Shown here one piece after another: positions 1-17,845 of a stretch of DNA of 17,845 nt. This stretch comes from Octopus sinensis. Taxonomy: Eukaryota. How positions within the stretch are numbered: position 1 is the first letter of the stretch; every line of letters begins with the position of its first letter. The stretch lies in contig NW_021824719.1 in the NCBI RefSeq assembly GCF_006345805.1, positions 1 to 17,845 of the forward strand, read 5' to 3'. The position numbers were made by a program, and so were the translations under genes. A model generated the notes under the pieces. It did no database searches and was not told the origin of the DNA. It saw only the letters and a list, made by a program, of their open reading frames with translations.

Positions 1-365
1 GGACCCCAGTAGACGAGGTGATAGGAACGTCGTCAACATAAGTATGCTTGTGGATTGCGTAAGCGAGATGTACGAGGGGGTATGCAGAAGGAGCCATTTC
101 GTGGCAGCACTCCAGTAAGTGATTTCGTCTGATGGAGTTAAAAGCATTAGATAAACTCCTCAGAAGATTTTAACAGCTCACGAATGGAATGGGCCGCGGC
201 CTCGCAACCATTAAAAACGCTGACACCAAGGTGAGCGGGCAGAAAGTTGGAGACAACAAGGGACAATGGCATGACAGAGAAGCTTAGTGGAGACCCTCCG
301 GAAAACATTTCCCACAGAGATGGGTCTTACTTCGTTGTCCTTCTTCCTTAAGCAGTAAGGTTTGC
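1..365 (-). pseudogene. Degenerate CRE-clade retrotransposon RT fragment (runs off the window start)
   Basis: Minus strand reads ANLTA/LRKKDNEVRPISVGNVFRRVSTKLLCHAIVP..LGVSVFNGCEAAAHSIRELL../SNAFNSIRRNHLLECC..AYPLVHLAY..DDVPITSSTGV with frameshifts and a deletion. Colinear with 2700-3085 of the intact element. Confidence 0.88.
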
Positions 366-368
366 TTA

Positions 369-431
369 CTGTATGATCGAGTTGAGTTTACTGTGACTGG
401 GGGCACGACCGGCACTCCGCCGCCGGAAAGC
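369..431 (-). mobile_element. ~60-bp piece of the CRE endonuclease region (RRSAGRAPxH-S-LNS)
   Basis: ctgtatgatcgagttgagtttactgtgactgggggcacgaccggcactccg is near-identical to 1580-1640 of the intact element. Confidence 0.8.
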
Positions 432-1058
432 AACATTTTCTTTTAGCGTAGTCCCGTTAATTCGTGGTCTTACTCGGAAGGTCGTTCCCGGATGAGGAGC
501 GTAGTGGTGTTCCATTGCGAGATTTGCGGGAGTTTTCCTGTCCATTTTTATGATGTGACCGAATAAGCCTTATCTATACTCTTCTTATTTCTTCGTCCGA
601 GGATGTACATTGTAATTGGAGTAGAGAGATGTTTGTTGATATGGGCTTTGGCCAAAAGATTTATAGAATGTATTTCAGCTGCATCTATGGAAGAAATTCA
701 GATTTTCCATTCGTGCACTGTGAGTGCCCAAGAGGAGGAATTGTACAATAAGATGGTTTTATAACGACATATTGTATAGTTTGATTTTTAAGACGCAGAA
801 ATTTGTTTACCTCTCAACCATAACGATGTTTAATCTTTTAAGCGCAAAGTTTTCTAGTGATTTTCTTCGTATCATGTCTTCTGTATCTCCTAAGAGAGTT
901 TCTTTGTATGTTTTCCATTTTTCCTCGTGTCGTTGTTCACATCGCCTCATCAATAGTGTATTCTGTTATCTCAGTGTTTAATTTTTAGAATGATTTTTCA
1001 AAATGTTGGCCAAATGTAATTGACAAATTTGTACCAAAATTTAAATAATATGTGAAAA
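432..1058 (-). pseudogene. Degenerate RTE-like LINE, C-terminal part of RT ORF
   Basis: Across frameshifts and stops the minus strand gives TEYTI..EEKWKTYKETLLGDTEDMIRRKSL..LKIKLYN..ILLYNSSSWAL..FWPKPISNKHL..RLFGHIIKMDRKTPANLAMEHHY..FRVRPR, the typical RTE post-RT region. The 960-1058 boundary is weaker. Confidence 0.75.
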
Positions 1059-1077
1059 TTTTTTTTTTTTTTTTTTT
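1059..1077 (-). repeat. Poly(A) tail of the CRE element (T19 on + strand)
   Basis: Uninterrupted 19-nt T run 43 nt beyond the ORF stop. Confidence 0.9.
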
Positions 1078-1120
1078 GAGTTCATAATTAAAAACAAGAC
1101 AAAAATTACAGATAGCTAAG

Positions 1121-4105
1121 TTAGTTAAAGGCCTCACGAGACACCCGACCAGCCGCGCGAATGGCGAAGACGTTCCCTCGGATCACAGCAATCGACAGAC
1201 GTTCCAGGAGCCAAGAAAACTCTCTTGGATCGTGACTAGTCCTTGAAATCCGTCGACCGAGCGAGCGAAGGAAGCGGAGTGTCTTGGGACCGAAGATCCC
1301 GGAGGACTCCAAGGCAATTGGAGTAAAGAGCAGCGAGTTGGACAGGTGGCCGTACTTGAGAATCTTTCGCTCCTCGGCCTGCCTGGAAGCGTGCCCAGGA
1401 TTGGCGGCGGACAGCGCGAGATTTCCCAGCGAGAACGTGTCCGAGCAGGTAGAATCCCAAATAAGGGATTTCCCCTGCTCGTAGGGGAAGGTGGACATGC
1501 CGTCAGGGCGTTTGCCATCCCCTCTATCCAATCCAACAGGTTCAAGGATAGACGGGATGCCTGCTGAGGCGAGGGCTCTCTGTACGACTGAGTTGAGTTC
1601 ACTGTGACGGGGGGCACGACCGGCACTCCGCCGGCAAGCGAGGGGATGCAAACCGTACTCGTCAACAGTTCCCCCACAACGGCATTTGTGCGACTGGCAG
1701 ATTTTCAGCCCGACACGGAGGGAGATTGCAATTCTTAGGCATTCCTTGTCCAACAGGTTCCCGATGGAAGGGAGAGGGAGAGCCTTTAACCAGACACCGC
1801 TGCTTTCACAGCGACCTGCACGGAGGCAAGCGACACGGTGTTGATTGGAGACAGGAAGCAGGCCTTCGAAGATTGCCTGACAAGAGATTTCGTCCCATTG
1901 GCGCTGTACAGATTGAGAGTTGGGCAGCTTCGAACCAAACCGAGCCTCCCACCGACCACGGGCTGCAGAGTAAACTTCAGACAATTTCCGTTCGGGGAGG
2001 TTTCTAAGAACGATGTCTGAGAGAGTACGAGAAGCGTGATGAGCGGATAGGAATGCCGGGAGGGCAAGATCGGAATAGGATCTCAAGCCAAGGCCACCCC
2101 AGCGCACAGGCAGGGATGCCTGAGTCCAGCCTGGATCGTCGAAAGCCAGATTGCAAAGAGAGCTCGTACCGAGCCTGAGGATATTGTCAAGGTCGGAAAG
2201 AAGGTCGCCTCTTTGAAAGCAGGGTGCACATCTTAGGGTGTAAAGGATCTTAGGGACGGAGAAGTGGTTTCGGAGGAGGAAAAAAGCCACATGAGGCTCG
2301 ATGACTTTAAGCTTGTCGATCATTTTGGATAAGTGGGAAATTTTTCCAGCGAGTGAGCATTCGAGGGCAGAAGGCCCCATGGGGGCACCGAGAATCGTAA
2401 GATTTGATTTGTCCGTAATCCGGACGTCTGAGAGAATGCCTCGGCACGTGGAAATTGAAGCAGTGAAGTCACTCGGATTTAAGGCAATGTTCACGATTTC
2501 GGATTTATTGGCGTTTATAGATAGGCCGATGTCCGAGAGGGAAGGGAGGATAGAACGAAGGTCGTCGAAAACAGCGTCGGGGGGACCGCAAATGGTTGCG
2601 TCATCCAGATACCATATGTTAACTGGGGATCGAACAGAGTGAGCGATACTGTTAACGCCCAAGGCAAAAAGGACAGGACCCAGGGGATCTCCCTGTTGGA
2701 CCCCGGTGGCCGAAGAGATGGGAACATCGTCAAACATGAGGATACTCGGAGAAGCGTATGAGAGATGTACAAGGGGATAAGCGAACGGAACCAGTTCGCG
2801 ACAGCACTCCAGCAGGTGGTCACGTCTGATGGAGTTGAAAGCGTTTGAGACGTCTAGTTTGACCATGATAGCCGACTGGGAAGATTCGATGAGTTCACGG
2901 AGAGAATGAACGGCCGCTTCGCAGCCGTTTGGGACACCGACCCCGAGTTGGGCGGGGAGAAACACTTGAGACAAAAAGGGGACAATTGCGTGGCACAGAA
3001 GTTTGGCAGAGAGCCTCCGAAAGATATTCCCAACGGCAATGGGTCTCACGCCGTTGTCCTTTTTCCCAAGGGCAGTAAGGTTGGCGGAAAAGAAAATATC
3101 ACGAGCAAAATCGGGGAGGGAACCGGAGATGAAGCGGTTGCACAGGTTGGTAATTGAGCGTAGGAGTTTTCGACCAGCTTCGGCGGTAGTGGGAGACGTC
3201 AGGTCTTTCAGATGACCTGGTCTCAGACCATCTACACCACCACTGCTTCCAGGTGAAAAGTCCCTCAGGGCTTTCAGTACAAGAGTTTCCGAGACAGCAA
3301 AAGGATTGAGAGCGAGGGTGTCAGGGGACGGCTGAGGCCTGAAGTCGTTTGGCTGAGGGGGATGTTTTTCCCTGAGGGAATTCAAAACAGCAGGGGTCGT
3401 GGGCAAAAGGGGACTTGTCGAGGCAACCAGCCTAACTGCACCACGAACGTCGCCGTCCAAGAGTTTACTATTAATCTTTCTGTTGAGGTAGTCGACGTCA
3501 TTCGCGTGAGAGGACACATTATGGGATGGTGAACCAGAGGGAAATTCGGAGCTAGCGAGGTGGTCCCGCAGCCAGCGGATGGAAAAAGAGTTCTTATCGT
3601 ACAAGGCCAATTCTTGTTTGACGGTTGTAGCCAGCGAAATGGAGGAGGTTTTCACACGGGCTCTTAATGGGGCAAAACCGAGACCAAAAGAGGCGAAGCA
3701 AAACAGCTTAAGCCAATCGGAATGGCCATCAGATGCCAAAGCCTTATCGATTGCGGCGGACAGGGAGGAGGCTGCAAAGATACGCGCAGCTTTTGGGATT
3801 CTGGATGGGATTTTCCGGAGACGACGGAAGAGCTTGATAGATTTGAGAACTTCCTCGGCAGACGGGGATGTTGCGAATGGCGGTTTTTCGGGGAGTTCTT
3901 GCGGGCTGGAACACTGAACCGGCTGGCAAGAGCGGCAGGAAGGACAGTCCCAAATTAAGAGAGAGGCAGAAACGCGCCTGGAAAGACGCACGCAAGAAAG
4001 GTGGAAGAATCTGTCGCAACTAGAACAGACTCTCCCTTTCTTGCGGTTGTTACTAACTTCGCAAGTAGAGCATAGAACAGAAGTGGGTTGGAAACAGAAA
4101 GACAT
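1121..4105 (-). CDS. CRE-type polyprotein, 994 aa: PHD finger + reverse transcriptase + CCHC zinc finger + restriction-like endonuclease
   Basis: First ATG at 4105 (the ORF-track start at 4264 is a TTG in low-complexity leader). PHD CSTC..CSSC..HLSC..WDCPSC (3935-4072); RT motifs GVRPIAVG, KLDVSNAFNS, GVQQGDPLGP, WYLDD; CRCG..HPLAC, RH, KRPDG..WD. No stops or frameshifts. Confidence 0.93.
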   Translation of the reverse strand: MSFCFQPTSVLCSTCEVSNNRKKGRVCSSCDRFFHLSCVRLSRRVSASLLIWDCPSCRSCQPVQCSSPQELPEKPPFATSPSAEEVLKSIKLFRRLRKIPSRIPKAARIFAASSLSAAIDKALASDGHSDWLKLFCFASFGLGFAPLRARVKTSSISLATTVKQELALYDKNSFSIRWLRDHLASSEFPSGSPSHNVSSHANDVDYLNRKINSKLLDGDVRGAVRLVASTSPLLPTTPAVLNSLREKHPPQPNDFRPQPSPDTLALNPFAVSETLVLKALRDFSPGSSGGVDGLRPGHLKDLTSPTTAEAGRKLLRSITNLCNRFISGSLPDFARDIFFSANLTALGKKDNGVRPIAVGNIFRRLSAKLLCHAIVPFLSQVFLPAQLGVGVPNGCEAAVHSLRELIESSQSAIMVKLDVSNAFNSIRRDHLLECCRELVPFAYPLVHLSYASPSILMFDDVPISSATGVQQGDPLGPVLFALGVNSIAHSVRSPVNIWYLDDATICGPPDAVFDDLRSILPSLSDIGLSINANKSEIVNIALNPSDFTASISTCRGILSDVRITDKSNLTILGAPMGPSALECSLAGKISHLSKMIDKLKVIEPHVAFFLLRNHFSVPKILYTLRCAPCFQRGDLLSDLDNILRLGTSSLCNLAFDDPGWTQASLPVRWGGLGLRSYSDLALPAFLSAHHASRTLSDIVLRNLPERKLSEVYSAARGRWEARFGSKLPNSQSVQRQWDEISCQAIFEGLLPVSNQHRVACLRAGRCESSGVWLKALPLPSIGNLLDKECLRIAISLRVGLKICQSHKCRCGGTVDEYGLHPLACRRSAGRAPRHSELNSVVQRALASAGIPSILEPVGLDRGDGKRPDGMSTFPYEQGKSLIWDSTCSDTFSLGNLALSAANPGHASRQAEERKILKYGHLSNSLLFTPIALESSGIFGPKTLRFLRSLGRRISRTSHDPREFSWLLERLSIAVIRGNVFAIRAAGRVSREAFN

Positions 4106-4268
4106 AGAAAGAGAGCAAGATAGAAACAATGAAAAAATGGATAACAAAGTGGAAAGAGAGAGATTATTAGATAGATGACAATTACAAAAATGGATTATAG
4201 AATAAGAAATGAACAAATGAAAAGAAAGAAATGAACAACAACAACAACGTGCAACAACGTGCAATTGA

Positions 4269-4335
4269 TGAAAAATTAATCTACGTCTCGATCTGCGAGC
4301 GCGACGGGGCAGGGATTTCCTATGTAATTTATTAG
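4269..4335 (-). pseudogene. Possible RTE RT remnant with degenerate (Y)ADDVDF motif, upstream half of the LINE interrupted by the CRE
   Basis: Minus strand tcc ctg ccc cgt..gcg ctc gca gat cga gac gta gat taa ttt reads SLP..ALAD(R)DVD*F. Spacing to the LKIN-KTEYT-like motif at ~990-960 matches an RTE RT once the CRE is removed. Confidence 0.4.
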
Positions 4336-4746
4336 TTAGTTCCCCGAACTATATTGGCATAGACCCTTCAACTCTCAATTTGTTTATTAGTATTTAAAAA
4401 AATTTTAACTTTGAGCATTCACAAAGCATAAATTTTCTTGTCTTCAGTCAAATTTCTAGCTTTAAAAGTTTTGATGTACGTACATGCGCGCAATAAATTT
4501 CCTTCCACCTACCTTTTAAATTTATCCTTTAAATATAAATGATCCAAGTGAATTAAGAACGACCAACTTCACTGATTAAAGTGAATTGGAGTTTGTTGTC
4601 ATGTTTTGAACTCGGTCAGCTAAACCATGTGAATGACTTCAATGCGGATGACATCACAATTAAAAACTACAAGATTATCTTGAGGAACAATGCCATCATT
4701 AATTTAAGTCCCCAACCATTTACTTTTTGTTAGTTAGTTATAGGAC

Positions 4747-5838
4747 CTGGTCGAGGATGACGGAGAGTCTGGCCGACTTGTGCTGTTCCGGGCGAGGACC
4801 AGAAAAATAGACGATTGTGCTGTCGGAAAATCCATTCAATCGGTCTGTCATTAAGTAGAAGGTGTACCCAGTGCATATTCGAGGTCTCTTCGATAAACAA
4901 ACCCCGCCAACACTTTGTAGTGCCTGAACACGACCACTGGAAATCCGTTGTAGTTCGTTTCCTCGAGAATTTGTTCTGAAATGGAGAGAAATGAATACTG
5001 ATTTCGAAAATGGTCATTTTGTTCTGCTCGATGACAGTCAGTTCGGCCGAGTTGTCCCTGAGAGTGAATGCCCAACAAAACATTGCGTGGAGAACGTCAT
5101 TGGCCGTGCCACTCTCGGAAATCTCGTCCTTTCCGTCGAGGAAGGGGAAGCCGTTCAGGTGGATGTGTCGGTCGTATCTATGGAATAAAAGCAGTGCCTA
5201 CATCCCCTCCTTCCCTAACCAGTCAGTAATCCACTTGCTGGTCATGGTGGCCATTATTATGGGGATTATGTAGGAAATCCCGCCAGTCATCTCGTACATA
5301 ATCACCACCAGGGACACTACTATAAATACTCAATAACACCAGTCATTCGGGTGACCCCCCAAGTGTGGCGGCAGCTCACACAAGCGCGTACACTCCGGGG
5401 TTGATCACAGCCACCAGAGAAGTCGAGTTGATGTAGAACGTCCTACAATGACCACAGTCTCCAACCGGGCAATCTGCTGCACTCCTATGCCTACGATTCG
5501 CCCCATTATTGCCCCCGCACAAATCGTGGGAATGAATAATCCAGCAAGCACCTTCGAATAAGCCCACACAACACCTTCAGTCCAAACGTGGTCACCGTGA
5601 ACACAAATTTGAGGACAAGGATGATGACCAACTGCCACATGGAGGTATATATTCTAGCCCCAAAGAGAAGGGTTCCCCTGACGGTCCTGCCCGACCGAGT
5701 AGTCCCATTGGTAGTCACTAAGACTGGAAAAGTCCACTACCAGAGCGGATTGGAATTTCCGACGTGGCAGGCAGCAAAGAGTTGTCGGATGAAGGAATTG
5801 GAGTCCTGACGAGTGAAGGAGAAGGGGTATTGCATGTT
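4747..5838 (-). pseudogene. CLC-3/4/5-type H+/Cl- exchanger fragment (late TM helices + CBS1), 8 tiny introns
   Basis: Spliced: [123 protein letters not shown]. Introns 5718-5740, 5552-5574, 5443-5465, 5317-5339, 5178-5201, 5058-5081, 4976-4998, 4845-4867. TGA at 5376-5378, frameshift in G run 5355-5360. N-terminal half and CBS2 absent. Paralog not resolvable. Confidence 0.9.
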
Positions 5839-5839
5839 G

Positions 5840-6335
5840 AATCCAGCGGCGTTAAGCGCGCGCTTCACAACGTCATTCAATGAGGCGTGCCTGGGGATCC
5901 TGCCGGCACTGAGGCGACAAGAGAGAGGGTGTAAACCTCTCCTGTCAATGAGTTGTTCACATCTGCAATGGTGCGGCTGGCAATCTCTATGCCAAGCCGT
6001 AAACAGATTCCGATGCGGACCGATTCGTCGTCCAGGAACATGCTCGCTGACGAGATCGGTAACGCATTCAACTAATCTCCGAATGCGGTTGACAAGCACA
6101 ATTAATGCTTGCCAACTAAACTAATCGGCGTGTGACCGGATATCTTCAATTATGTGAGAACAATAAATGTTGTCCCAGTTCTTTTGAGCCGACGGAATGT
6201 CCGGGACTTTAAGCCCCCGAGAAACCCACACGTTGACACCAGCCGCATATTCCAACAACTCGCACTGTTCAGAAGAGGGAAAAAGAACAGAGTTGACGAA
6301 ATTAGTGGAAGCGGACAATGAAAACCGTAACGGGC
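5840..6335 (-). pseudogene. Degenerate fragment of a second, divergent CRE family (post-RT linker, CCHC finger, start of RLE)
   Basis: SAQKNWDNI..LNALPISSASMFLDDESVRIGICLRLG/..CRCEQLIDRRGLHPLSCRLSAGRIPRHASLNDVVKRALNAAGF, homologous to the C-terminal third of the intact ORF. Frameshifted, truncated at both ends before KRPDG. Confidence 0.85.
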
Positions 6336-7599
6336 TTACCATTGAAATAGTCTATAGAATCTTTTCTTTGAAATAACATTTGTTTGCTATATAATATTAC
6401 AAATGTTTTAATTTATTTTAAAATTTAAGTAAATTTAGAGTAATAAAATTCCGGAAATTTGAACAAACAAGTCTTTACGTAGTGCATTATATTTTGCCGT
6501 CAATTTTATAAAGTATGTTAATTTAAAACAATTTTTAATATAGAATAAACTCTAAATGTCAGAAAACCTTCTTTTTTCAATGTGTAATAAAATGGTGGAC
6601 AATTATGTGCGAAATAAATACAATAACCGCCTTGATTACACTTTGATAGAAACAATTTGAGAATGATTATGTCTCATTATTCGAGACAGCTTGTGCATTA
6701 GAGTTTGTTCTAATGTACATAAAACGGTGTTTCAATAAAGGGGACGACGGGTATAAGGTTGTGCTTGAGAACTTCTTACTGGACTTGATCATAGCCGGGA
6801 GAAAGCCAGAATGGCCTGGAGCAGATTTAATGTTGAGTATTCTCCTCAAATTACTTGTAAAATATTAAATTTGATTTTTATGTCAAACAATTCTCCAATA
6901 AGTCTTTGGAAGTTGTTTTCCGACTGCAAGCACTGGATTATATGATCATGGCAATCCCCCGCATACACGAGGACATGGAGGTATTCAAGGTCCGTCAAGT
7001 CTTCCTCACAAAGTTTCTCTAAAAAATATTTGGGGACACTTCTGAGGAGGGACACTTCTCGATTCTAAAGGCCCGATCAGAATTTATTACGTAATCTTTG
7101 ATTTCCTTGCCTTGAGGGGAAATGTGGGAATAGTTAGTATTGAGATCTACCCTTGTAGACTGCCAGGTCATTTTTGATTGGGAAATTAGTTCATTATTTG
7201 TCGGAGAAGGAAAATAAAGCCAAAATTAATGATTTGAGGAAATATCTTTCTCGCTCAGTCGATGAAATAGAACAGTCCTATAAAAACTGGAATTATCTTT
7301 GGATCATGAGAAGGTGAGTTCTTGCCTAGCCTTCATTCAATACCGGGGCCCATTTGTCCCCAATTTCGATAGTTTTCTCAAATTTGTCATCGTCCGAGTA
7401 ATACTACTTAAAAGAACTAGTAGATATTACAATGTTTAAGTGAGCCAATTGCCAATCTGAGAACTAAGGCAGAAAAATTTTTGAATTTTGTTGTGGATAT
7501 TTTTATATTTTCTATATAATAAAATCATTCAAAAATCACAATTTATTAATTAATATTATATATTATTGTATTTTATTTTTAAATTTTGCACGTTATCGA

Positions 7600-8039
7600 A
7601 TGTTTCTAATTACACTATCACAAGAGGATTTATTGAAAATAAAAACTTTTAAACAATTTTGAACATTTGATGACGGAATCAGTAGAAGAGAACGTTTTAG
7701 ATTACGTAGGATTGCTAACCGAATACTTATTGAGGAAAATATAGCCTACATATACCAAAGGAATAAAAAAGTCAGATTATTCTGCATAGAAGAACAAGAG
7801 TTAAAGCTGAAATATATAGAAGTATCAATTTATTTAATTATGATTAGTGTGAGCACAATTATGTACATTTTGGAAGAGATAAAATGTTTTCTATGCTTAA
7901 GGGAAAGATATATGGTGCAACTCGGGAAGAGATTAGCAAAATAATTGAAAAATGTGCTTATTGTCAGGTATTTAGTTAAATTATTCGATTTCAGTCTAAA
8001 AAATTACATTTTAGTCGGCTAAGGAAATTAAAAAAATAA
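7600..8039 (+). pseudogene. Ginger/GIN-like (Gypsy-integrase-related) transposase remnant: N-terminus + HHCC zinc domain, two tiny introns
   Basis: MFLITL..*TFDDGISRRERFRLRRIANRILIEENIAY..KYIE|CEHNYVHFGRDKMFSMLKGKIYGATREEISKIIEKCAYCQ|SKK..*. H-x3-H..C-x2-C integrase zinc motif. Introns 7822-7847 (26 nt) and 7968-7994 (27 nt), TGA at 7660. No DDE core. Confidence 0.7.
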
Positions 8040-8069
8040 TTTTTAATATTTTAAAATTGTTTCTAAATT

Positions 8070-8115
8070 AAAAAAATTCAAGTTAATCGACTAAAAAAAT
8101 TTAAGTTAATCGATA
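8070..8115. repeat. 23-bp tandem duplication downstream of the integrase remnant
   Basis: aaaaaaattcaagttaatcgact followed by aaaaaaatttaagttaatcgata. Confidence 0.7.
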
Positions 8116-8452
8116 AAACGTTATGTCGGGTCAAAAATGCGTTATGTTTGTTTTTTGTGGGGGAATAATATGAACTTTTATCCAAAAAAAACATAAAAAA
8201 CACTAATATGGTATACTTGGAGTAAGGTATATTTATTTTTTATTTATTTTTATAAATTTTTAAAACTGACTCACGTCTCGACTGTGACACATTTCTTAGA
8301 AGTGTATACTTTAATTGTTACTCGCAGGTATTCAAAGAATCTGGGGAGAACAGTGGCAATGTCTTGAAGGCAGCATTGCAGATTGTTGATTGTATAATAA
8401 CTAATGTAATAGCACTGGACGAGTCTATTGCCAGTTGTATGTTTTATACAAT

Positions 8453-9114
8453 AGAGTCAGGGAACGTAAGCTTGGCGCTCGTCCCGTAGCCACTACCAAC
8501 CAAACCGTTGACAGGTTGGTTGGCAAGGGGGAAAAATTGGTTCTGTTTGTTGCTGATGTGAAATCAGCATCCAATCGTCTCCACGAGAAGGTGAACCACA
8601 TGACGATCAATTTCTTGACAAATGCCGAACCCTAAATCACCCTGGCTACTTCCTCTGGCACTCCACTAACAACAGGAGAATAGTTCCGACCCTCGCGGAC
8701 AAAGTCCGCAAGCTTATACATCCCCTCCGGACATTAACCAGAAGGGGATTCACGACCTGGTGGCTACGAGGGCAATCAGATGTCTTGGAATAAACAAGCT
8801 TCTGGGACGCCTTCCGCCGCCAATTAATAAGATCGAATCCTCCCTCTCAAGAGAAGCCCGAGTGAACTTGGCTCGTCTCCGCTGTGGCCACCATACTGGC
8901 CTACACGATTATCGCATAAAAATCGGTCTTGGTGAAATAACCCCTTCCTATTCCCTCAACGACCTTTTCTCCTGTCCAGGCCCGCCTTCTACTTCCTCGG
9001 AACACCGGATCACGATCGGGGATCTTTGGAGGCGTCCGACATTGGCCCTAACGTTCTTGTTAGCCACCGGCTTTCTTCAATTGAAGGGGCCGGGGGTAAA
9101 TAAATAAAAAATAA
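8453..9114 (+). mobile_element. 5'-truncated LINE (I/Jockey-group-like C-terminus) with 14-bp TSD
   Basis: TSD atgttttatacaat at 8439-8452 and 9115-9128; 3' (TAAA)n/A-rich tail. KGIHDLVATRAI..NKLLGRLPPPINKIESSLSREARVNLARLRCG..LFSCP..LWRRP..FL resembles the C-terminus of I-group ORF2. Confidence 0.85.
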
Positions 9115-10163
9115 ATGTTTTATACAATTTAAGGACACTCTTGTTCGGAGGGGTATCATCCAAACAGATTGGTGTTATGTTATGAGACACTTGAGATATT
9201 TTCCCGCGTTCATCCAACGTTATTGACGTCACATTTGATGAAACTTCTGCCTTATTTGAGCAGTGCTGGATCGGTTACTCAGTTGTTGATTATTGTTCAG
9301 GCAGATAGTGGGATATAGAGAGCACATTAGAAATAGTACAGAACACGATAGGCCTTATTGACCACCCAGGTGATGCAATGATAGCACATTTGGAAGAACA
9401 GATCATACGAATACTACTACTCCAAGGAATCAACGTATTCTTGTAGTTCACATCTTAGGTCATTAGCAGTTCAGTCAAATGTCTAAGTATAATTGTCCGC
9501 ATTTCTAATAATAAAAAACTTGTTCAAGATTTCTTCAATCGATTTTTCAGTATTTTTATTAGCACTAATTAAGATATTCTTCGAATTAAGAAGGAAGAGA
9601 TCGAACGGAGTAGAACTATTGAGTCTAGTATAAAGTCTCACGTCAAGAGATCCCTTTATATCGTCGCCCTTCTCTGTCGGTTTTTTGACATTGAGAACGA
9701 GATTTTCAATTTTCAGAATGTTTGGATGTTTTTTGACATTCATAGGAACAGATTATACCCAAAATATTTGAAATGTGTTACTACTTTTGTGTATTTGAAG
9801 ACTCAGATCTGCGGTTTGAATCTTTAATGGCTCTTGGTTAGTCACTGTGTTGTATCGATAGGTAATTTGTTGGTACGTGGTCATCAATTTATGATTCAAG
9901 ATGAAATAAAAGTCCTTTATTTTGGAATATTGGAAGAGTGTGCCAACAATGTGCAGCTATGCATACAAGTTTTAACTAATCTGGAAATATTTATTGTCCA
10001 TCATTCCAAAACTGAGAACACAAACCGTTTGTGACTTCTCTGATATTATAGCACAAAGTTGCTATGCTTTTGTACAAGACATTCGAGAACATTCCGCCAA
10101 TACAACAACAGGGTTGCCATTTTCAATGAATTTTAGACTGGACAGTGCAATAACCCAAATATT

Positions 10164-10216
10164 TATGAGTCATAAATTATGACTCATATCCTGTCTTGTT
10201 CATAAATTATGACTCA
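10164..10216. repeat. 17-bp direct repeat overlapping a 25-bp palindrome
   Basis: tcataaattatgactca at 10170-10186 and 10200-10216; tatgagtcat-aaatt-atgactcata at 10164-10188. Confidence 0.85.
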
Positions 10217-10410
10217 GGACATTAGCATAAGGAATTGCTCTGTTAATCTCCTGAGCTAAATTACCCACTCTGGGTTAGTCCAACCTGTTGTTGTGATCTC
10301 ACACCTCATTGCACTCGCCTCTGACAGTGTTCTTGATATTAAATGTAAGGCAGTTGCCTTGCTTTCACATATCGAACGGAAAGAACCGGGATTTGTCCAC
10401 GTTGTATTCA

Positions 10411-12953
10411 ATCAACGAATTGTACCAGAATTCGATCAATATCGTCAAGCGACTTATCACAAACAGTCACAATTATTTGTCTAAATGGAAAAAATATCGG
10501 CCGATCTGGAAAGTGGACAAAGTAAAGCCTTTCAGCCCACCTAGGCAACAATCATTGAAAAATGGTTCAGCAAAGGCCCGTCCATCGTCGCTTTCGACGA
10601 CCAATTTCAGCTCTACATTAAAATCATCAAAGAAATAGAGAAAGCTAACGACATCCAAGACATTGAGTGTCTCCGAATAAACATGCAGCCTTTGGTTGGC
10701 TCTCTCAAAGAGCATGCAAACAAATGGACTGAATGTCTGGGAAATCATTTGCACGATTCGGTGAGAGACTCGTTATTCCACGTCCGAGATTATGTCAATG
10801 TTCACCTAACTGGATAATCAATAGAACAAATACAAACAACTGGCGGTTGAGCCCGAAACGTTGGAAGAGCTAAAATTTGTCTTGAAAGCAATTTCTGACA
10901 TCAAAAAAGATAGACTGGAGATTGAAGTAAAAATATACCAACTCCTCGAAGGCTATCGCTAAAAATCACAAAGTCAAATTAGACATTTGTCGATGTACGA
11001 ACTCCCCTATTCAGACGAGGAACGGGAGTTGGTGGAGACTATTAACGAGAAATGGCAGTCACTCGTGTACCAATCCAAAGTCAAAGACGTGGGCCTTACA
11101 CTTGTCGAGAGACGTTTTATTGAAGTATTCGCTCGCCATTAAAATTAGCTGACCAAAAATTCGATCATCGAGTTTTCCACCAAAGTAAAAGAATTCTCCG
11201 ATCGATACTTTGAATCCGGTCCCGGGCTGTGTGGAACTGTTTCCTGATTTTTGTCAATTTAGGGAAAGTTTGTTGGTCGATTTCAGTGGAGAACTCGAAA
11301 AACTGTTCACTGAACGCCAGGAAATTTTGAATGTTGAACACCTCTTTGATTTGGAAATTAGCAATCACCCCGAACTAAACAGAATTGAGAAAGACGTGGA
11401 AGGACTGAGGAAAATCTTTGCAATATATTTGGAACAGGGAATTTTCAGAACCTTTGACCTTTCACGTAGAAAGCGCGGGAAACCTGGGCAGAGATATTGT
11501 GGTCCAATTTAAATGTGCAGACTTTGAGCGAAAAAATCGACGAATTTTTGAAAGCGCTGAGAAAGCTAGCAAAAGAAATAAGAGGCTTCAAACTTTGGGG
11601 AATCGTCAAAAACAAAATAAAGCAATTCAAGGAATCGCTGCCCCTTTTTATTGATTTGAAGAACGAGGCCCTGAGAGAAAGGTACTCAGCCCCATAAACC
11701 CGCCAGGCACTGGAACAACTTGATGGAAAAGACTGGAAAGAGATTCGACATCAACCCAGACACGTTCACCCTCTCCAGCGTCTTTGAAATGAATTTGCAC
11801 GATTTCCAAGATGAAATCTCGAATATCGTGACATGTGCTATCAAGGAAATGGCGATCCTTTTCTTATTTCAGGGAATCAAAGAGATAGAGGACACGTGGA
11901 CGAACATGCGCTTCAGCATTTCAATGTACACCAAGGGCACTACCAATCGAGGGTAAATAATTGGGAGTGTCGAGGACATTCTGCAAATCATCGACGACAA
12001 CTCCCTCAATTTGCAGAGCATGGCTGCTTCTCGATTCGCAGCTCCCTTTGTCAACAGTGTGCGGCACTGGGAAAAGTCCTTGTCTCCGATCTCCGAAGTG
12101 ATCGACGTATTAGTCCCCAGTCAATTGAAGGTGTGGGTCAACGTCCAGCGCAAATGGATGTACTTGGAAGGAATTTTATTGCGGCGACATTCGAATGCAA
12201 CTTCCAGATGAAGCCAAAGTCTTTGACAGCCTTGAAAGACCTTCAAGTGGGTTGTTCCCGTCCTCCCACGGTAGATCATGCGGGAAACAGCCAAAAATAC
12301 GCGAATCAAATTTGCATGTCACGTCAAAGGTCGATTGAACGAAATGAACAGTCTGGCCGCAAGACTCGAAAAATGCCAGAAATTCCTGAATGACTACCTC
12401 GAGTCAAAACGAAACGTTTTCCTACGGTTTTTCTTTATTTCCGACGACGAACTGTTGAGCATTTTGGGAAGCAGTGATCCCGAATGTGTCCAGGAACACA
12501 TCATCAAAGTATGTGCTGTACACGACTCTAGATGTTCGATAACGTCAAGTCGTTAAAGTTCGACAAAGGAGGGAGTGGAGAGTTGTTGGTTTCCGCCATG
12601 ATTTCTGCGGAAAAGGAAATCATGGACTACAAGCAACCAATTTTGGCTGACGGGAAAGTGGAAGACTGGACGACGGACGTTCATAAGGAAATGCGGTCTT
12701 CCAACCGGCAGATCACAAAGGAGGCCATCTTCTATTATCGTTTCGAAGGGAAACCCAGGTTTGTCCAGTCCGGTGACGCCGCAGAATTTTGTGGATTAAA
12801 GACTACCAGGGCATGGTCTCTCTTGCCGCAATCCAGATTTGGTGGACCTGGGAAGTCGAAGATGTGTTTGAGAAAATCAGGAAAGGGAAGAAGACTCCGC
12901 TTAAGAAGTACCTGCAACTGCTTCATCATCAAATCAGCGACTTGGTGGTGCAG
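10411..12953 (+). pseudogene. DNAH10: Axonemal dynein heavy chain 10 fragment (tail/DHC_N2 linker region; no AAA ring)
   Basis: Spliced: YLSKWKKYRPIWKVDK..PETLEELKFVLKAI..LWSNLNVQ..LPLFIDLKNEALRERHW..VQRKWMYLEGIF..GDIRMQLPDEAK..LEKCQKFLNDYLESKRN..RFFFISDDELLSILGSSDPECVQEH..AMISAEKE..ITKEAIF..YQGMVSLAAIQIWWTWEVEDVF, close to recalled DNAH10. Nine canonical 23-26 nt introns. Lesions: TAA 11954-11956, CT donor 10959, lost donor near 11858, frameshifts near 11235, 12175-12183 and 12240. Confidence 0.92.
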
Positions 12954-12958
12954 GTATG

Positions 12959-13106
12959 ACACGTGAAGATCTGAGTATGGATCTTTACAATTACACAAAT
13001 CTTGTAGAAAATTTTATGACGCAAGCTTAGAGAGGGTAAGAAGGTTTAAGTCGACCTCAAACAAGATTTGTGTAATTGTAAAGATCCATACAAGATCTTC
13101 ACGTGT
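12959..13106. mobile_element. MITE-like element, 148 bp, ~46-bp terminal inverted repeats
   Basis: 12959-13005 acacgtgaagatctgagtatggatctttacaattacacaaatcttgt matches the reverse complement of 13061-13106 except for one small indel/mismatch. No clear TSD. Confidence 0.85.
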
Positions 13107-13321
13107 GTAATATCAATCGAGCTGAAAAACAAACTAAATTATTAATAGATTTATAAAAAAATAATAAAAGGTAACTTATATTATTTTTGGACGCTGAATT
13201 CAAAAATGTTATCAGATATGAGATCAGACCTTCAAACTTCGAGATCTAGAAATTGGTCCCTTATCTTTACGTAGAAATGTCTAACATAAAAATGAACTTG
13301 TTTTTTGAGTTCGCGAGAAAA

Positions 13322-13850
13322 TTTTAGCTAATACCAATGCATATTTCATCATTTCTCTTAATGCCTGCTTTGGCATTCCAGTCTCCTGTCAGAAATAAGA
13401 CTGTTGTCTTGTTTAATACGTTGCATAATTCTGAGAGGCTTGCGTAAAACTTGTCCAACTCATCAGAAGCAACCAACAGTCTCCCCGTATGGGGTGCGTA
13501 CACGTTGATGATGGATAAAGTATTACTTCCTTTCGATTTCAATTTGATTTGAAGAATCGCGATGCGGTCATTAACACTCCAGACTTTGAGTTCACTCTTT
13601 TCCAGCGAGGCTCGAACAGTGAATCCCAATCCGTAGTGTCGGCACTCAGAGGGGAGAAATATAAGGCGGTATTTTCCATAAGCTTCATCTGCCCTTCCGC
13701 GACCTTCGTCTCTTGAAGACAGCACACATCAACCCCGTAACGGTCTAGGTCGTCGCATAAGGTATTCCGTTTTGACTTCGCTGACAGTCCTCTAACATTA
13801 AAAGAAACAATAGTAAAAGGCCTCGATCGAATAGAACATGTTTGAGACAT
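13322..13850 (-). pseudogene. RTE-like LINE 5' fragment: AP-endonuclease domain
   Basis: FTIVSFNVRGL..DLDRYGVDVCCLQETK/..HYGLGF..VNDRIAILQI..IINVYAPH..FYASL..LTGDWNAKAG..CIG. One frameshift near 13690; truncated after the GDWNA motif. Confidence 0.88.
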
Positions 13851-14123
13851 ATCAAAGAGAGGTACGTCACCACCTCAACCAATCTTAATGGCCGCATGGC
13901 CATATGGATAGTAATCCATAAACTGAAAGTTCAAATCACAGCAAAAGGCGTATAAATGCGAATCTTGAATACTATCTAGTAAAAAGATTATATTTTGAGA
14001 ACCAAGTCTAATTATGTTGAATTTAACTTTATTTATTTAGTTACAAAAAATTATTTTGATTTATTTTAAAAAGCATGTCATCTAATTCGTCGTCACGTAG
14101 GTTTAAGCGCAAAATTTACATAC

Positions 14124-14781
14124 ATGGGTGTGAATTTTCTGGTTAGTTTTAAGCAAATCACATCTGCAGGAAAATATTTGTTTATTAACTGTTTTTTCAA
14201 TAATAGAAACAGGAAATTGACTTCAGCCATAGTATGTAATAATGAAAATAATGTGGTAGAACAAAGATTGTTCTTGACGGTAAAGGGGGAAGATGTTGAA
14301 ATTAATTTTTTTGAATGTCCTAAATTGGTAATTTTTTTTAATATTTTGTAATATACAAGAGTGAAATTACAGGTACCTACTATAATATGAGATATAGCCT
14401 AACTGCCTTAGGATATATTATTTTATATAACGTGAATAATGAAAAGAGGTGAGATCAATGTTTTACCTTAAGTTTTTTGTCAGCCAAGCTAACTTTGGGT
14501 TATATTAAAAAATTTCCCCAATGTTTCATCCTTCGTCTAATTGGACTTGCCGTTATCCGGTAGTTCTCGCAGGCACTTATTTCGATCCAAATAAATCCAA
14601 TGAACTGATAGAACGTGCTGATAAGTTTGCAAATTATATGAATATTCCTCATATTCTTACATCTTCTGAAAATAACTTTGTTTATTTTATTTATTTATAT
14701 TTGTAGAACGTCGATTTGGCTTTCAGGACATTATTCTATGAAATAGAAAGTTATTATGGCTTATATGCTCCTGAATTCTAA
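14124..14781 (+). CDS. Highly divergent Ras-superfamily small GTPase-like gene (candidate pseudo-GTPase or pseudogene)
   Basis: Exons 14124-14327, 14360-14448, 14473-~14522, ~14545-14679, 14707-14781. Motif order SAGKYLFINCF, LTVKGEDVEINFFECP, LGYIILYNVNNEKSF, YPVVLAGTYFD, ADKFANYMNIPHILTSS, NVDLAFRTLFYEI follows the small-GTPase fold. One frame switch at ~14520-14563 is unresolved. Confidence 0.55.
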
Positions 14782-14976
14782 ATTACAAAAATTATATTTT
14801 TAAATTAATTAGAAAGGTGTCGATTAAAGGAACACAGATTGATGATAATTCAAGACAAAACCCTAGAAAAAATTTAATAATTTTAGCTAATATAGTTATA
14901 TTTTATTACAACTTAATTGGTAATATTTAAATTTAATTTGACTGATGTAACATGTTTCTAGTGCGAACATGTAATA

Positions 14977-16514
14977 CAGTGATTCTTAACGGGGGCGCTG
15001 GCGCCCCCCTGGGGGCGCTGGAACATATTAGGGGGGCGCTGGAATTTTAATTTTTTTTAATTATTAAAATATTTATTAGTTTTTGTAAATCATATCACGT
15101 GCTTTTCTATTAATTCTAAATTCAAATTGTCTTGTGGTACGTAAAAAAATTATTCACTGATAATATTTATAAATATTGTGTAATTGTATTTAATATTTTA
15201 GAACTTTTTAATAAATATTTTAATTTATTTTATAGATGTCTGATAAAAAAGTAAAACGACGTATATATTCGGATGAATACCTAAAGTTTGGAGTGATACC
15301 CTACGACCATAACATTCACTTCCAATGTGTCTTATGTGTAAAAAGGTCTTTACAAATGAAGGAATGAAGCCTTCAAGAATGCTAAATCATCTTAGATTTG
15401 TCATCCTGAAAACTTGATGCGGATATCAATTATTTTCTAATTGAAATATAATTATGAAAATCGTCTTATGATTAATCAACTATTTACAAAAAATTCGAAG
15501 ATGCTTGAAAAGGCCTATTAGCATCATCAATCTTAGAATTTTGTCAGTTACATGAGCAGAGAATTTTTAGGAATTATTCCTTAATCATTTTGTAGTTGAT
15601 TTTTTGAAAGCTGATATAGCTTATCTAGCTGATATTTTTTATAAAATCAACCAAGTAAATATAGCTTGCAAGGAACAATATCAATTTAATAAATGTAAAA
15701 GAAAGGAATTATTATGCCTTTTATTGAAAAATACAACTTTATGAAAACAATATTAAGAAAAAGATTTATTAATTTTCCAAATCTACAAAATTTGGGGTTA
15801 TTTTTTGTAATAATATTTATTAGGTCGAAAAATTAACGGATTCTGACTGTGAATGCTTTTGCTTGCATCTAAAAATGTTAAAAGATGACATGAAAATCCG
15901 CTTTGAAGATTTAGAAAATTTAAAATTTTTTGATTGGTATATAAATCCATTTGAAACTGAAAACGTTAATTTATCTCAAGAAATAACAGAAAATTTATTA
16001 AATCTGAAATATGACTTTGAAGCTAAAGTCATTTTCAACAAATATGGATATCAACAATTCTGGGTTACTCATAGAAAAAATATCCTTTATTGTGGAATGA
16101 AATTGAAACACTTATAATAGCATTTCCTTCAACATATCTAGTTGAAAGAGGATTAGTGCAGTCTCTAATATTTTGACCAAAAAAAGAATAAATTACAAAT
16201 TGTGAATAGAGGAGATTTGAGACTAAGTCTGTCGACTATTGAAGCTGACATAAAACGATTGACAAATTCCCATCAAGCACAAGGCAGTCACTAAAATTTT
16301 TTTATATAAAAAAGTTTGGTTTGTGAATACCCCTTTTAATTCTAAAAAAATAATAAGTAATATTCGAAAATATTAAAATGAAACAATTGGCGAAAAAATT
16401 GCCAAATAAATCTATAATGAAAAAAATAATTAAATAATAGGGGGGCGCTGAAATTTTGAAGCTTCGAAATTGTGTCAAAGGGGGCGCTGACTTAAAAAAG
16501 GTTAAGAACCACTG
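14977..16514 (+). mobile_element. Non-autonomous hAT DNA transposon (Buster/Charlie type), 1538 bp
   Basis: TIRs cagtgattcttaac (14977) and gttaagaaccactg (ends 16514); exact 8-bp TSD atgtaata at 14969-14976 and 16515-16522; subterminal GGGGGCGCTG motifs at both ends. Confidence 0.95.
15236..16294 (+). pseudogene. Internally deleted ZBED5/Buster-like hAT transposase
   Basis: BED finger RRIYSDEYLKFG..PMCLMCKKVFTNEGMKPSRMLNHL; later IAYLADIF, RFEDL..WYINPF, AFPSTYLVERG, GDLRL..HQAQGSH*. The catalytic core appears deleted at ~15535; many stops and frameshifts. Confidence 0.85.
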
Positions 16515-17000
16515 ATGTAATAAAACATATTAATTCTAAACAAATCAAAAATACATAGTTAGCAATTAAAAAATATATATAAATGTTAATCTGACGCTCT
16601 AAATCATTTCTGTATTCAGAAATCTCATCAGATCTTCCTAGAGAGAGTTATGAATTCTGTCCCAGATTTCTTTAGGAAGGTCTGAGGAGAAAACCGAGGT
16701 GATTTCCGAGCTCAGGAGCAAATTTTAGTTAATTAGTTATAAATTATTATGTTTTAAAGCGATTAAATTTGGTGGGTGTTTATTTTTCTAGTGGGGCACC
16801 ACGTGCGATGGCAATCAGGGTCAACTTCGGATCTATTGAGTCCCTAATGTAATATATCAAACCGCAAGTATCTTACTCAATTTGATCAAATACGTCAACA
16901 AAATTTTTCTAGTGGCAAGAAACATAATGAATCACTTCTAAAATAATAGCGTTCTTATTTAAATCTAAAAGTGCGTTTTTATTTTCACCAAATATAAACT

Positions 17001-17845
17001 CGAGATCTCCACTTGTGTGCAACCAATCGACCTGATTTTTTCCAGGACAACTGCCTCCCTTGATGGTATACTATATTCACTTGTTCAACCTCCTCTAAAC
17101 CTTTTTACTATCTCATACTAAGGAACTATGTACGATCTAACTTAAGATGTCAGACTTACAATGTAAATAAGAAAATAAATAAATTAATAAATTAAAAATA
17201 TTGTTATATATCAATTTTGATGTTTTATTAACGTTTTTGCATGCTAAACTGGAGTCAGACGTTCCTAGACCTTAGTTTCTTTATAGGCCACTACAATGTA
17301 TGCTAATGGCCTATCCATAAGGACCCTTCTAGAAGAGGCCTGGAATTATGCAGTTTATTGATAAAATCTCTAGAATACATTAACAAATGCCCTAAAATAT
17401 TAAAAATCAGTCAATTAACAAATTTGAAAAGCTGAACTGTCTGAACTTTAGATATTTCTAACTAAAAATGAGTCTTTATTTCCCGACAAAACACCCCCCG
17501 AGATCTCCACTTGTGTGCAACCAATCGACTTGATTTTTCCAGGACAACTGCCTCCATTGATCGTCTATTATATTAATATGTTCAACCTCCTCTAAACCTT
17601 TTTACTATTTCATACTAAGGAACTATGTACGATCTAACTTAAGATGTCAGACTTACAATGAAATAAGAAAATAAATAAATAATAAATTAAAAATATTTTA
17701 TATATCAATTTTAATGTTTTATTAACGTTTTTGCATGCAAAACGGAGTCAGACGTTCCTAGACCTTAGTTTCTTTATAGGCTACTACAATGAATGATAAT
17801 GGCCTATACATAAAAACCCTTCTAAAAGAGGCCTGGAATTATGCA
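17001..17845. repeat. 498-bp tandem duplication (second copy runs off the window end)
   Basis: cgagatctccacttgtgtgcaaccaatcgac.. starts at 17001 and 17499; the copies align with scattered substitutions and small indels to the end of the window. Confidence 0.95.

Follow-up and report, generated by a model that had tools for sequence, protein, structure and literature searches.

A stretch of 17,845 nucleotides from the Octopus sinensis assembly GCF_006345805.1 (contig NW_021824719.1, positions 1 to 17,845 of the forward strand; the whole stretch is called the window below) was found to contain, at positions 4747-12953, broken, intron-bearing partial copies of three genes, encoding a CLC-type exchanger, the cohesin loader NIPBL, and the dynein heavy chain DNAH10, amid transposon debris and in AT-rich surroundings. 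The patchwork is real and belongs to a known type of structure; it is otherwise an ordinary pseudogene patchwork. An initial annotation had described internal portions of the three genes without start or end, joined either directly or through transposable element (TE) fragments and copied as DNA rather than retroposed. Matches in the PDB and the lack of flanking exons confirmed the internal portions, with slightly refined coordinates. The description of the joins also held, as the retrotransposon piece at 5839-6351 abuts the CLC fragment, and the interval 10404-10437 contains the join between NIPBL and DNAH10. The tiny introns that were kept agree with copying at the DNA level. We further found disabling lesions in all three fragments, which were absent from that annotation. 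The fragment models were spliced by hand and then checked by script, and the window represents 17.8 kb of a single locus. The patchwork is composed as follows.

4747-5838, minus strand: fragment of a CLC-3/4/5-type H+/Cl- exchanger, 9 exon pieces and 8 introns
5740-5718, 5574-5552, 5465-5443, 5339-5320, 5201-5178, 5081-5058, 4998-4976, and 4867-4845, minus strand: CLC introns, GT-AG, 20-24 nt
5839-6351, minus strand: internal, frameshifted piece of a non-long-terminal-repeat (non-LTR) retrotransposon, lacking both ends, with a Cys/His region 'CRC...HPL.C...RH'
6352-6649: AT-rich spacer without detectable homology, between the retrotransposon piece and the first NIPBL exon
6650-7505, plus strand: NIPBL block a, equivalent to 6wg3_E ~369-640
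6857-6881 (GT..AT, acceptor lost), 7091-7116, and 7398-7423, plus strand: introns of NIPBL block a
7506-8261: filler in NIPBL, 756 nt, AT-rich, replacing ~130 highly conserved residues (6wg3_E ~641-777)
8262-10403, plus strand: NIPBL block b, equivalent to 6wg3_E ~778-1203 and interrupted by a long interspersed nuclear element (LINE), the homology ending with '...ERKEPGFVHV' at 10403
8434-8452 plus 9129-9133 (24 nt without the LINE), 9435-9458, 9550-9573, 9720-9745, and 9837-9861, plus strand: introns of NIPBL block b
8453-9114, plus strand: LINE, 5'-truncated, with an A-rich tail, 662 bp, inside a 24-nt NIPBL intron
10404-10437, plus strand: NIPBL-DNAH10 junction interval, a join of unique to unique sequence within 34 nt
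10438-12958, plus strand: fragment of DNAH10 that spans the end of the tail and the entire linker, in 12 exon pieces with 11 introns

The spliced DNAH10 fragment, 747 codons long, aligns with residues 1034-1779 of the 4526 residues of 9fqr_K2 (E value, 4e-230) and with residues 1097-1842 of the 4589 residues of the human protein 8j07_k8 (E value, 1.3e-226). Among dynein classes, DNAH10 scored 769 bits, DNAH2 343 bits (E value, 3e-101), and all others at most 312 bits, and judged by these scores the source gene is an orthologue of DNAH10, the heavy chain of inner-arm dynein f/I1. The closest database relatives, mollusc DNAH10 among them, are 43 to 45% identical. The copy is missing ~1090 N-terminal residues and the ~2750-residue motor, and references extending beyond the fragment ends detected neither AAA1 motor exons nor DHC_N1 tail exons across the 17.8-kb window. 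Within the fragment, a TAA at 11954-11956 replaces a Tyr of the orthologues, two intron donors are damaged (CT at 10959 and GG at 11438), and exon 12131-12250 carries a +1/-1 pair of frameshifts. The spliced model of 2241 nt is divisible by three owing to this compensating pair. A further candidate for a damaged splice site, between 'KTFK' and 'IM', was dropped, because the PDB alignment gives a canonical 24-nt intron at 12251-12274 plus Trp for Arg.

The NIPBL fragment (6650-10403, plus strand) consists of two colinear blocks and matches human NIPBL (7w1m_E and 6wg3_E) with an E value of 2.4e-71 in the PDB search, while a word-indexed protein search with the same model gave no match at an E value of 1e-8 or below. 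The matched positions are 369-493, 562-640, and 778-1203 of the 1652 of 6wg3_E; it thus sets in after the first ~370 residues of the structured part of human NIPBL and leaves the last ~450 residues of the protein absent. Block a carries a TAA at 7020-7022 in place of a human Lys, as well as frame changes near 7100-7180 and near 7290; block b carries a frameshift near 9300 and a TAA at 10257-10259 in place of a human Leu, and its homology is lost over 10020-10230. These frame changes are located approximately, not to the single base. An apparent stop at 9567 was discarded, because it lies inside a canonical in-frame 24-nt intron. The only stretch of block b that has lost its homology also contains, at 10166-10216, two copies of a 17-nt near-palindrome, TCATAAATTATGACTCA, 30 nt apart; they may be the footprint left by a transposon or else a very small miniature inverted-repeat transposable element (MITE).

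Two interruptions were observed in the NIPBL copy. The filler between the blocks contains a 23-nt tandem duplication (8069-8118) and a piece of the integrase zinc finger of an LTR retrotransposon (7848-7976, plus strand; Integrase_H2C2, E value 2e-4, below the Pfam cut-off). The LINE is flanked by a perfect 14-nt target-site duplication, ATGTTTTATACAAT, at 8439-8452 and 9115-9128. It is unlikely that a working gene in a genome of tiny introns would tolerate a 662-bp LINE in a 24-nt intron. Just upstream of block b, positions 8231-8249 form a 19-nt exact reverse complement of the A-rich tail of the LINE (9098-9116); a second insertion that was truncated almost entirely could explain it, as could a chance match in AT-rich DNA.

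The CLC fragment, of ~300 residues, corresponds to residues 443-719 of the 818 of human CLC-3 (PDB search; E value, 7.7e-64), and weak colinear similarity extends to about residue 770 (window position 4750), for a total equivalent of ~443-770. It contains the last transmembrane helices and the first CBS domain, whereas the first ~440 residues and the second CBS domain are missing. Searches of the whole 17.8-kb window with references extending past the fragment end did not detect a CBS2 exon, and a low-stringency tblastn search for CBS2 returned noise only. Its best database relatives are CLC-3/4/5-type proteins with 50% identity, and the contig that encodes the best of them is from an unrelated sample and has long exons. 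An in-frame TGA occurs in 'GVYALV*AAATLGG', where CLC-3 has Gly. Two compensating frameshifts were found, one inside exon 5717-5575 and the other at a G6 run near 5352, owing to which the spliced model of 909 nt is divisible by three. An apparent stop in 'AMFCWAFT' was rejected, as it falls in a canonical in-frame 24-nt intron.

At least 27 introns are kept, 11 in DNAH10 (23-34 nt), 8 in CLC (20-24 nt), and at least 8 in NIPBL (24-26 nt). Their sites match breaks in the frame or alignment, nearly all are bounded by GT..AG, and their excision restores colinearity with the orthologues. The copies were therefore templated by DNA and are not retrocopies; a processed pseudogene or LINE-mediated retrocopy was rejected on the same ground, together with the lack of an A-tail at the fragment ends and of a target duplication around the gene fragments.

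With both ends missing and with nonsense, splice-site, and frameshift lesions, all three copies are dead. The four nonsense codons (TGA for Gly and TAA for Tyr, Lys, and Leu) are each one substitution away from a residue conserved in the orthologues; as the four stops stand for four different amino acids, reassignment of stop codons was rejected. Three splice-site substitutions were found, namely, the two donors in DNAH10 and the AT acceptor at 6880-6881 in NIPBL. These counts, 4 nonsense codons in ~1,690 codons and 3 hits in ~108 splice-site bases, would by our own rough estimate correspond to a decay of ~2 to 3% at unconstrained sites since constraint was lost. The paired compensating frameshifts of CLC and DNAH10 could reflect coincidence, slippage mutations, or consensus errors, while consensus error cannot account for the nonsense and splice-site substitutions.

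The retained introns also bear on the identity of the host. Myxozoans are not known to have cilia, and the presence of a ciliary dynein gene points to a dicyemid and against a myxozoan. Introns of 20 to 34 nt with a reduced 'GTa...AG' signal have been reported among animals only for Dicyema japonicum and myxobolid myxozoans (PMC13644364). A dicyemid host is plausible on these sequence features. The genome of D. japonicum measures 67.5 Mb and consists of 49% repeats (PMC6736024), and chromatin elimination and extrachromosomal circles have been described in Dicyema (Noto et al. 2003, as cited in PMC6543705).

At the joins of the patchwork, three further elements in its vicinity have to be considered.

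1121-4348, minus strand: non-LTR retrotransposon, apparently full length, with an open reading frame (ORF) of 1047 amino acids at 1121-4264 (RVT_1 by Pfam)
12959-13106: palindromic MITE- or foldback-like element, 148 bp, the inner arms (31 nt) and outer arms (14 nt) both perfect
13327-13874, minus strand: N-terminal endonuclease piece of an APE-type LINE (Exo_endo_phos, E value 1.9e-7), truncated on its 3' side

The full-length retrotransposon sits ~400 nt from the CLC fragment. A three-frame comparison revealed that the piece at 5839-6351 corresponds to the C-terminal Cys/His region of its 1047-amino-acid ORF; the two share no nucleotide similarity and are related at the protein level only. 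The TE-CLC fusion was placed at 5838 +/- 8, in the middle of a CLC exon and inside the coding region of the retrotransposon rather than at a transposon end. In the NIPBL-DNAH10 interval, positions 10404-10428 form a GT..AG 25-mer, the excision of which would put the NIPBL and DNAH10 frames in phase; it could be a hybrid intron or chance. A suggestion that all fragments end 3' at intron donors was dropped as unprovable, because the GT that follows is equally a Val codon. The palindromic element begins 2-5 nt past the last DNAH10 codon, and beyond it lie AT-rich DNA and then the LINE endonuclease piece. As this piece is truncated on its 3' side, retrotransposition alone cannot explain it. No relationship was found among the AT-rich spacers. 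The G+C content at third codon positions (GC3), for which frames were set by locating conserved peptides, is 0.67 in CLC, 0.56 in DNAH10, and 0.40 in NIPBL, and 0.27 in both the AT-rich matrix and a neighboring candidate GTPase gene; intron G+C content is 0.41, 0.45, and 0.28 in CLC, DNAH10, and NIPBL, respectively.

We tentatively favor the reading that unprocessed pseudogene fragments, from separate source loci for the three genes, and retrotransposon pieces were joined by nonhomologous breakage and rejoining without a carrier. Pieces of CLC-3-type, NIPBL, and DNAH10 genomic DNA would have been brought together with retrotransposon pieces in an AT-rich, transposon-rich stretch through end-joining or template-switch repair of DNA breaks. 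As they have neither starts nor ends, the copies would never have been functional from the outset. They would since have decayed by ~2 to 3% at unconstrained sites, the NIPBL copy being hit additionally by the LINE and by one deletion-plus-filler event, and intact parent genes would be expected elsewhere in the genome. The differences in GC3 and intron G+C content between abutting fragments are a weak hint of distinct, GC-richer source loci. Likewise, at least six kilobase-scale junctions set against ~2 to 3% point decay would be better accommodated by one or a few complex events than by many later deletions. It is on the compositional differences and on this number of junctions relative to the small point decay that a patchwork from separate loci is marginally favored. 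The truncation of other transposon pieces on the 3', or "wrong," side suggests that breakage and rejoining are general in the region. Repair by template switching or end joining fits the anatomy, although from the window alone it is indistinguishable from deletional erosion of a block of genes.

Several points weigh against this reading. The parent genes are postulated, and the searchable collections hold no protein more than 50% identical to any of the three fragments; microhomology or templated insertions at the junctions can be read only against parent sequences. The differences in GC3 may mirror gene-specific codon use, not location. The frameshifts placed to the base, in CLC and DNAH10, are all at short homopolymers and so are possible long-read consensus errors. 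Finally, the NIPBL copy displays an in-situ deletion with filler, which is what erosion of a gene block requires.

In that alternative, CLC (minus strand), NIPBL (plus strand), and DNAH10 (plus strand) were once neighbors, in a segmental duplicate or at their original locus, and once the block had become redundant or silenced, TE insertions and a series of kilobase-scale deletions stripped away the intergenic DNA along with the ends of the genes, so that the remains came to lie side by side. We consider this doubtful but nearly as likely as joining from separate loci. It needs no special mechanism, and deletion with filler is visible inside NIPBL, where two colinear blocks surround the replaced 130-residue segment. 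That deletions are frequent in this region is shown by the retrotransposon pieces truncated on the 3' side; a deletion that began within an inserted element and extended into the gene would leave a join like that between TE and CLC; and the similar lesion density of the three fragments fits a single age. However, at least 5 to 6 independent kilobase-scale deletions within 8 kb would be required during only ~2 to 3% point divergence, and the fragments differ in GC3 and intron G+C content, with CLC and DNAH10 also differing from their AT-rich context. NIPBL/Scc2 is essential, and erosion of the original locus would imply a recent loss of this cohesin loader, which is unlikely.

It is improbable that the adjacency is an artifact of merged assemblies or chimeric reads, so that the fragments would not be contiguous in the organism. 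If D. japonicum is the host, its assembly was indeed a merge, in which separate Illumina (Platanus) and PacBio RS II (Falcon) assemblies were combined and then processed with HaploMerger (PMC6736024), and rearranged and circular DNA has been reported in dicyemid DNA preparations (PMC6543705). The homopolymer position of all base-placed frameshifts in CLC and DNAH10 is also in keeping with assembly error. Misjoins, however, arise at shared repeats, whereas the NIPBL-DNAH10 and TE-CLC joins connect unique to unique sequence with nothing shared. Each fragment has nonsense or splice-site substitutions of its own, which argues that working genes were not stitched together, and the perfect 14-nt target duplication of the LINE indicates base-level accuracy in this part of the assembly.

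The initial annotation had likened the mosaic to Pack-MULE- or Helitron-style capture while identifying no carrier ends. The latter observation was corroborated by our searches. Self-BLAST and repeat searches of the window detected terminal inverted repeats neither around the mosaic as a whole nor around any of its fragments. Above 31 nt, the only inverted repeat is the 148-bp palindrome at 12959-13106, which is self-contained, and no sequences pair across any fragment. No 9- to 10-bp target duplication of the Pack-MULE type was found in the window, where the only convincing duplication is the 14-mer of the LINE. A crude scan for Helitron 3' ends (hairpin plus CTRR) gave none at the boundaries and two weak matches with 6-bp stems away from them (1236 and 6121). 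No MULE or Helitron protein was present among the long frames of the window that were read or searched against Pfam, which was not a complete six-frame scan. Capture by such an element, whose ends would have decayed or lie outside the pieces examined, is thus quite improbable: one junction partner is the interior of a retrotransposon ORF, and neither flanking inverted repeats, non-LINE target duplications, nor Helitron ends at the boundaries accompany the fragments, so that the analogy drawn in the annotation was not upheld. In its favor, mosaics of intron-containing internal fragments are a hallmark of these elements, as in rice Pack-MULEs and maize Helitrons, and a 148-bp palindromic element stands exactly at the end of DNAH10.

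A developmental route specific to dicyemids, in which excised DNA or circles are religated and reintegrated, yielding recurrent mosaics that may be limited to germline or soma, has a very small chance of being correct here. Its support comes from the literature (Noto et al. 2003, as cited in PMC6543705) and from the plausible dicyemid host. The window contains no sequence feature specific to this route and no recurring junction motif, the NIPBL blocks are colinear and lack the permuted order of a circle junction, and the route presupposes a host identity that is no more than plausible. We likewise attach little credence to the broader proposition that this mosaic is one of a recurrent class in which such rearrangement reinserts excised or circular gene and transposon pieces, perhaps differently in germline and soma.

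Least probable of all is that the minus-strand part arose by reverse transcriptase jumping from a neighboring element to an unspliced CLC transcript and on to the RNA of another element: R2-type enzymes do jump templates, and the retrotransposon piece, CLC, and the full-length element share an orientation and follow in the order that 5' jumps would give, but a completely unspliced transcript would be needed, since 8 of 8 CLC introns are kept, between CLC and the element ORF lie ~400 nt of AT-rich DNA that do not resemble the GC-rich element, and the plus-strand NIPBL-DNAH10 pair is left unexplained.

Other features of the window lie outside the patchwork. Besides the reverse transcriptase, the ORF at 1121-4264 encodes a weak PHD-like finger at the N terminus and the motif 'CRC...HPL.C...RH...KRPD' at the C terminus, with no APE endonuclease detected by Pfam, and we take it to resemble the restriction-like-endonuclease (R2/CRE/NeSL) group. 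Pieces of the same family occupy 1-545 (minus strand), with a nucleotide identity of 69% over 1-365 and 91% over 369-422, matching nonadjacent parts of the element. A candidate small-GTPase gene at 14075-14781 (plus strand) has a Met start, a P-loop-like 'GCEFSGK', the peptides 'VVLAGTYFD' and 'TSSENNFNVDLAF', and short introns, with weak PDB matches to Rab proteins (E value, ~0.004). Lying 1.1 kb from the mosaic, and with a GC3 of 0.27 that equals that of the AT-rich surroundings but not that of the three fragments, it is possibly a resident gene that is still intact. An open frame of 97 amino acids at 15824-16114 (plus strand; '...FFDWYINPFETENVNLSQEITENLLNLKYDFEAKVIFNKYGYQQFW...') had no Pfam match and presumably resembles the C-terminal region of hAT-type or domesticated transposases. 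A direct repeat at 16956-17352 and 17453-17845, of ~400 nt with 90% identity and a period of ~497 nt, runs past the right edge of the window; it is either satellite-like or a short element present twice. Searches of the window for tRNA genes and Rfam families gave no match.

Such a locus is a warning for annotation: chimeric or partial "NIPBL," "DNAH10," and "CLC" models could be predicted from it by gene finders, which would inflate or confuse the gene count, and with a dicyemid host this count is said to be only ~5,000. With such a host, the patchwork would also be a small, defined test case for the breaking and rejoining of DNA in a genome for which elimination and circle formation have been reported. 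Three of its junctions are unique to unique and amplifiable, and at a decay of ~2 to 3% a simple BLASTN search should suffice to detect any existing parents. Its interest is modest unless it is one of many such mosaics or differs between germline and soma; if a class of dicyemid rearrangements did exist, loci of this kind would be a record of DNA cutting and pasting in an animal, either programmed or induced by development.

Several known systems resemble the patchwork in part. Processed pseudogenes and chimeric LINE retrocopies share with it dead gene copies beside a LINE, but here the introns are kept and there is no poly(A) or target duplication. Pack-MULEs and gene-capturing Helitrons likewise form chimeric arrays of internal, intron-containing fragments of different genes, although their marks (terminal inverted repeats, 9- to 10-bp target duplications, and a 5'-TC with a 3'-hairpin-CTRR) are missing here, where a piece of a retrotransposon ORF is joined instead. 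The filler DNA of break repair, including fork stalling and template switching and microhomology-mediated break-induced replication (FoSTeS/MMBIR), typically consists of pieces of tens to hundreds of base pairs and is defined by junction microhomology, whereas the likeness here lies in the anatomy: several short pieces, presumably of unlinked origin and including transposon bits, direct joins, an arbitrary register, and no carrier ends. In the mosaic duplication zones known from primate pericentromeric and subtelomeric regions and from Drosophila heterochromatin, the pieces are tens of kilobases long, while here they are 1 to 4 kb, the parents are postulated, and the genome, if that of D. japonicum, is very small; like the patchwork described here, these repeat-rich zones hold intron-containing partial copies of unrelated genes, truncated and decaying, that meet at nonhomologous junctions.

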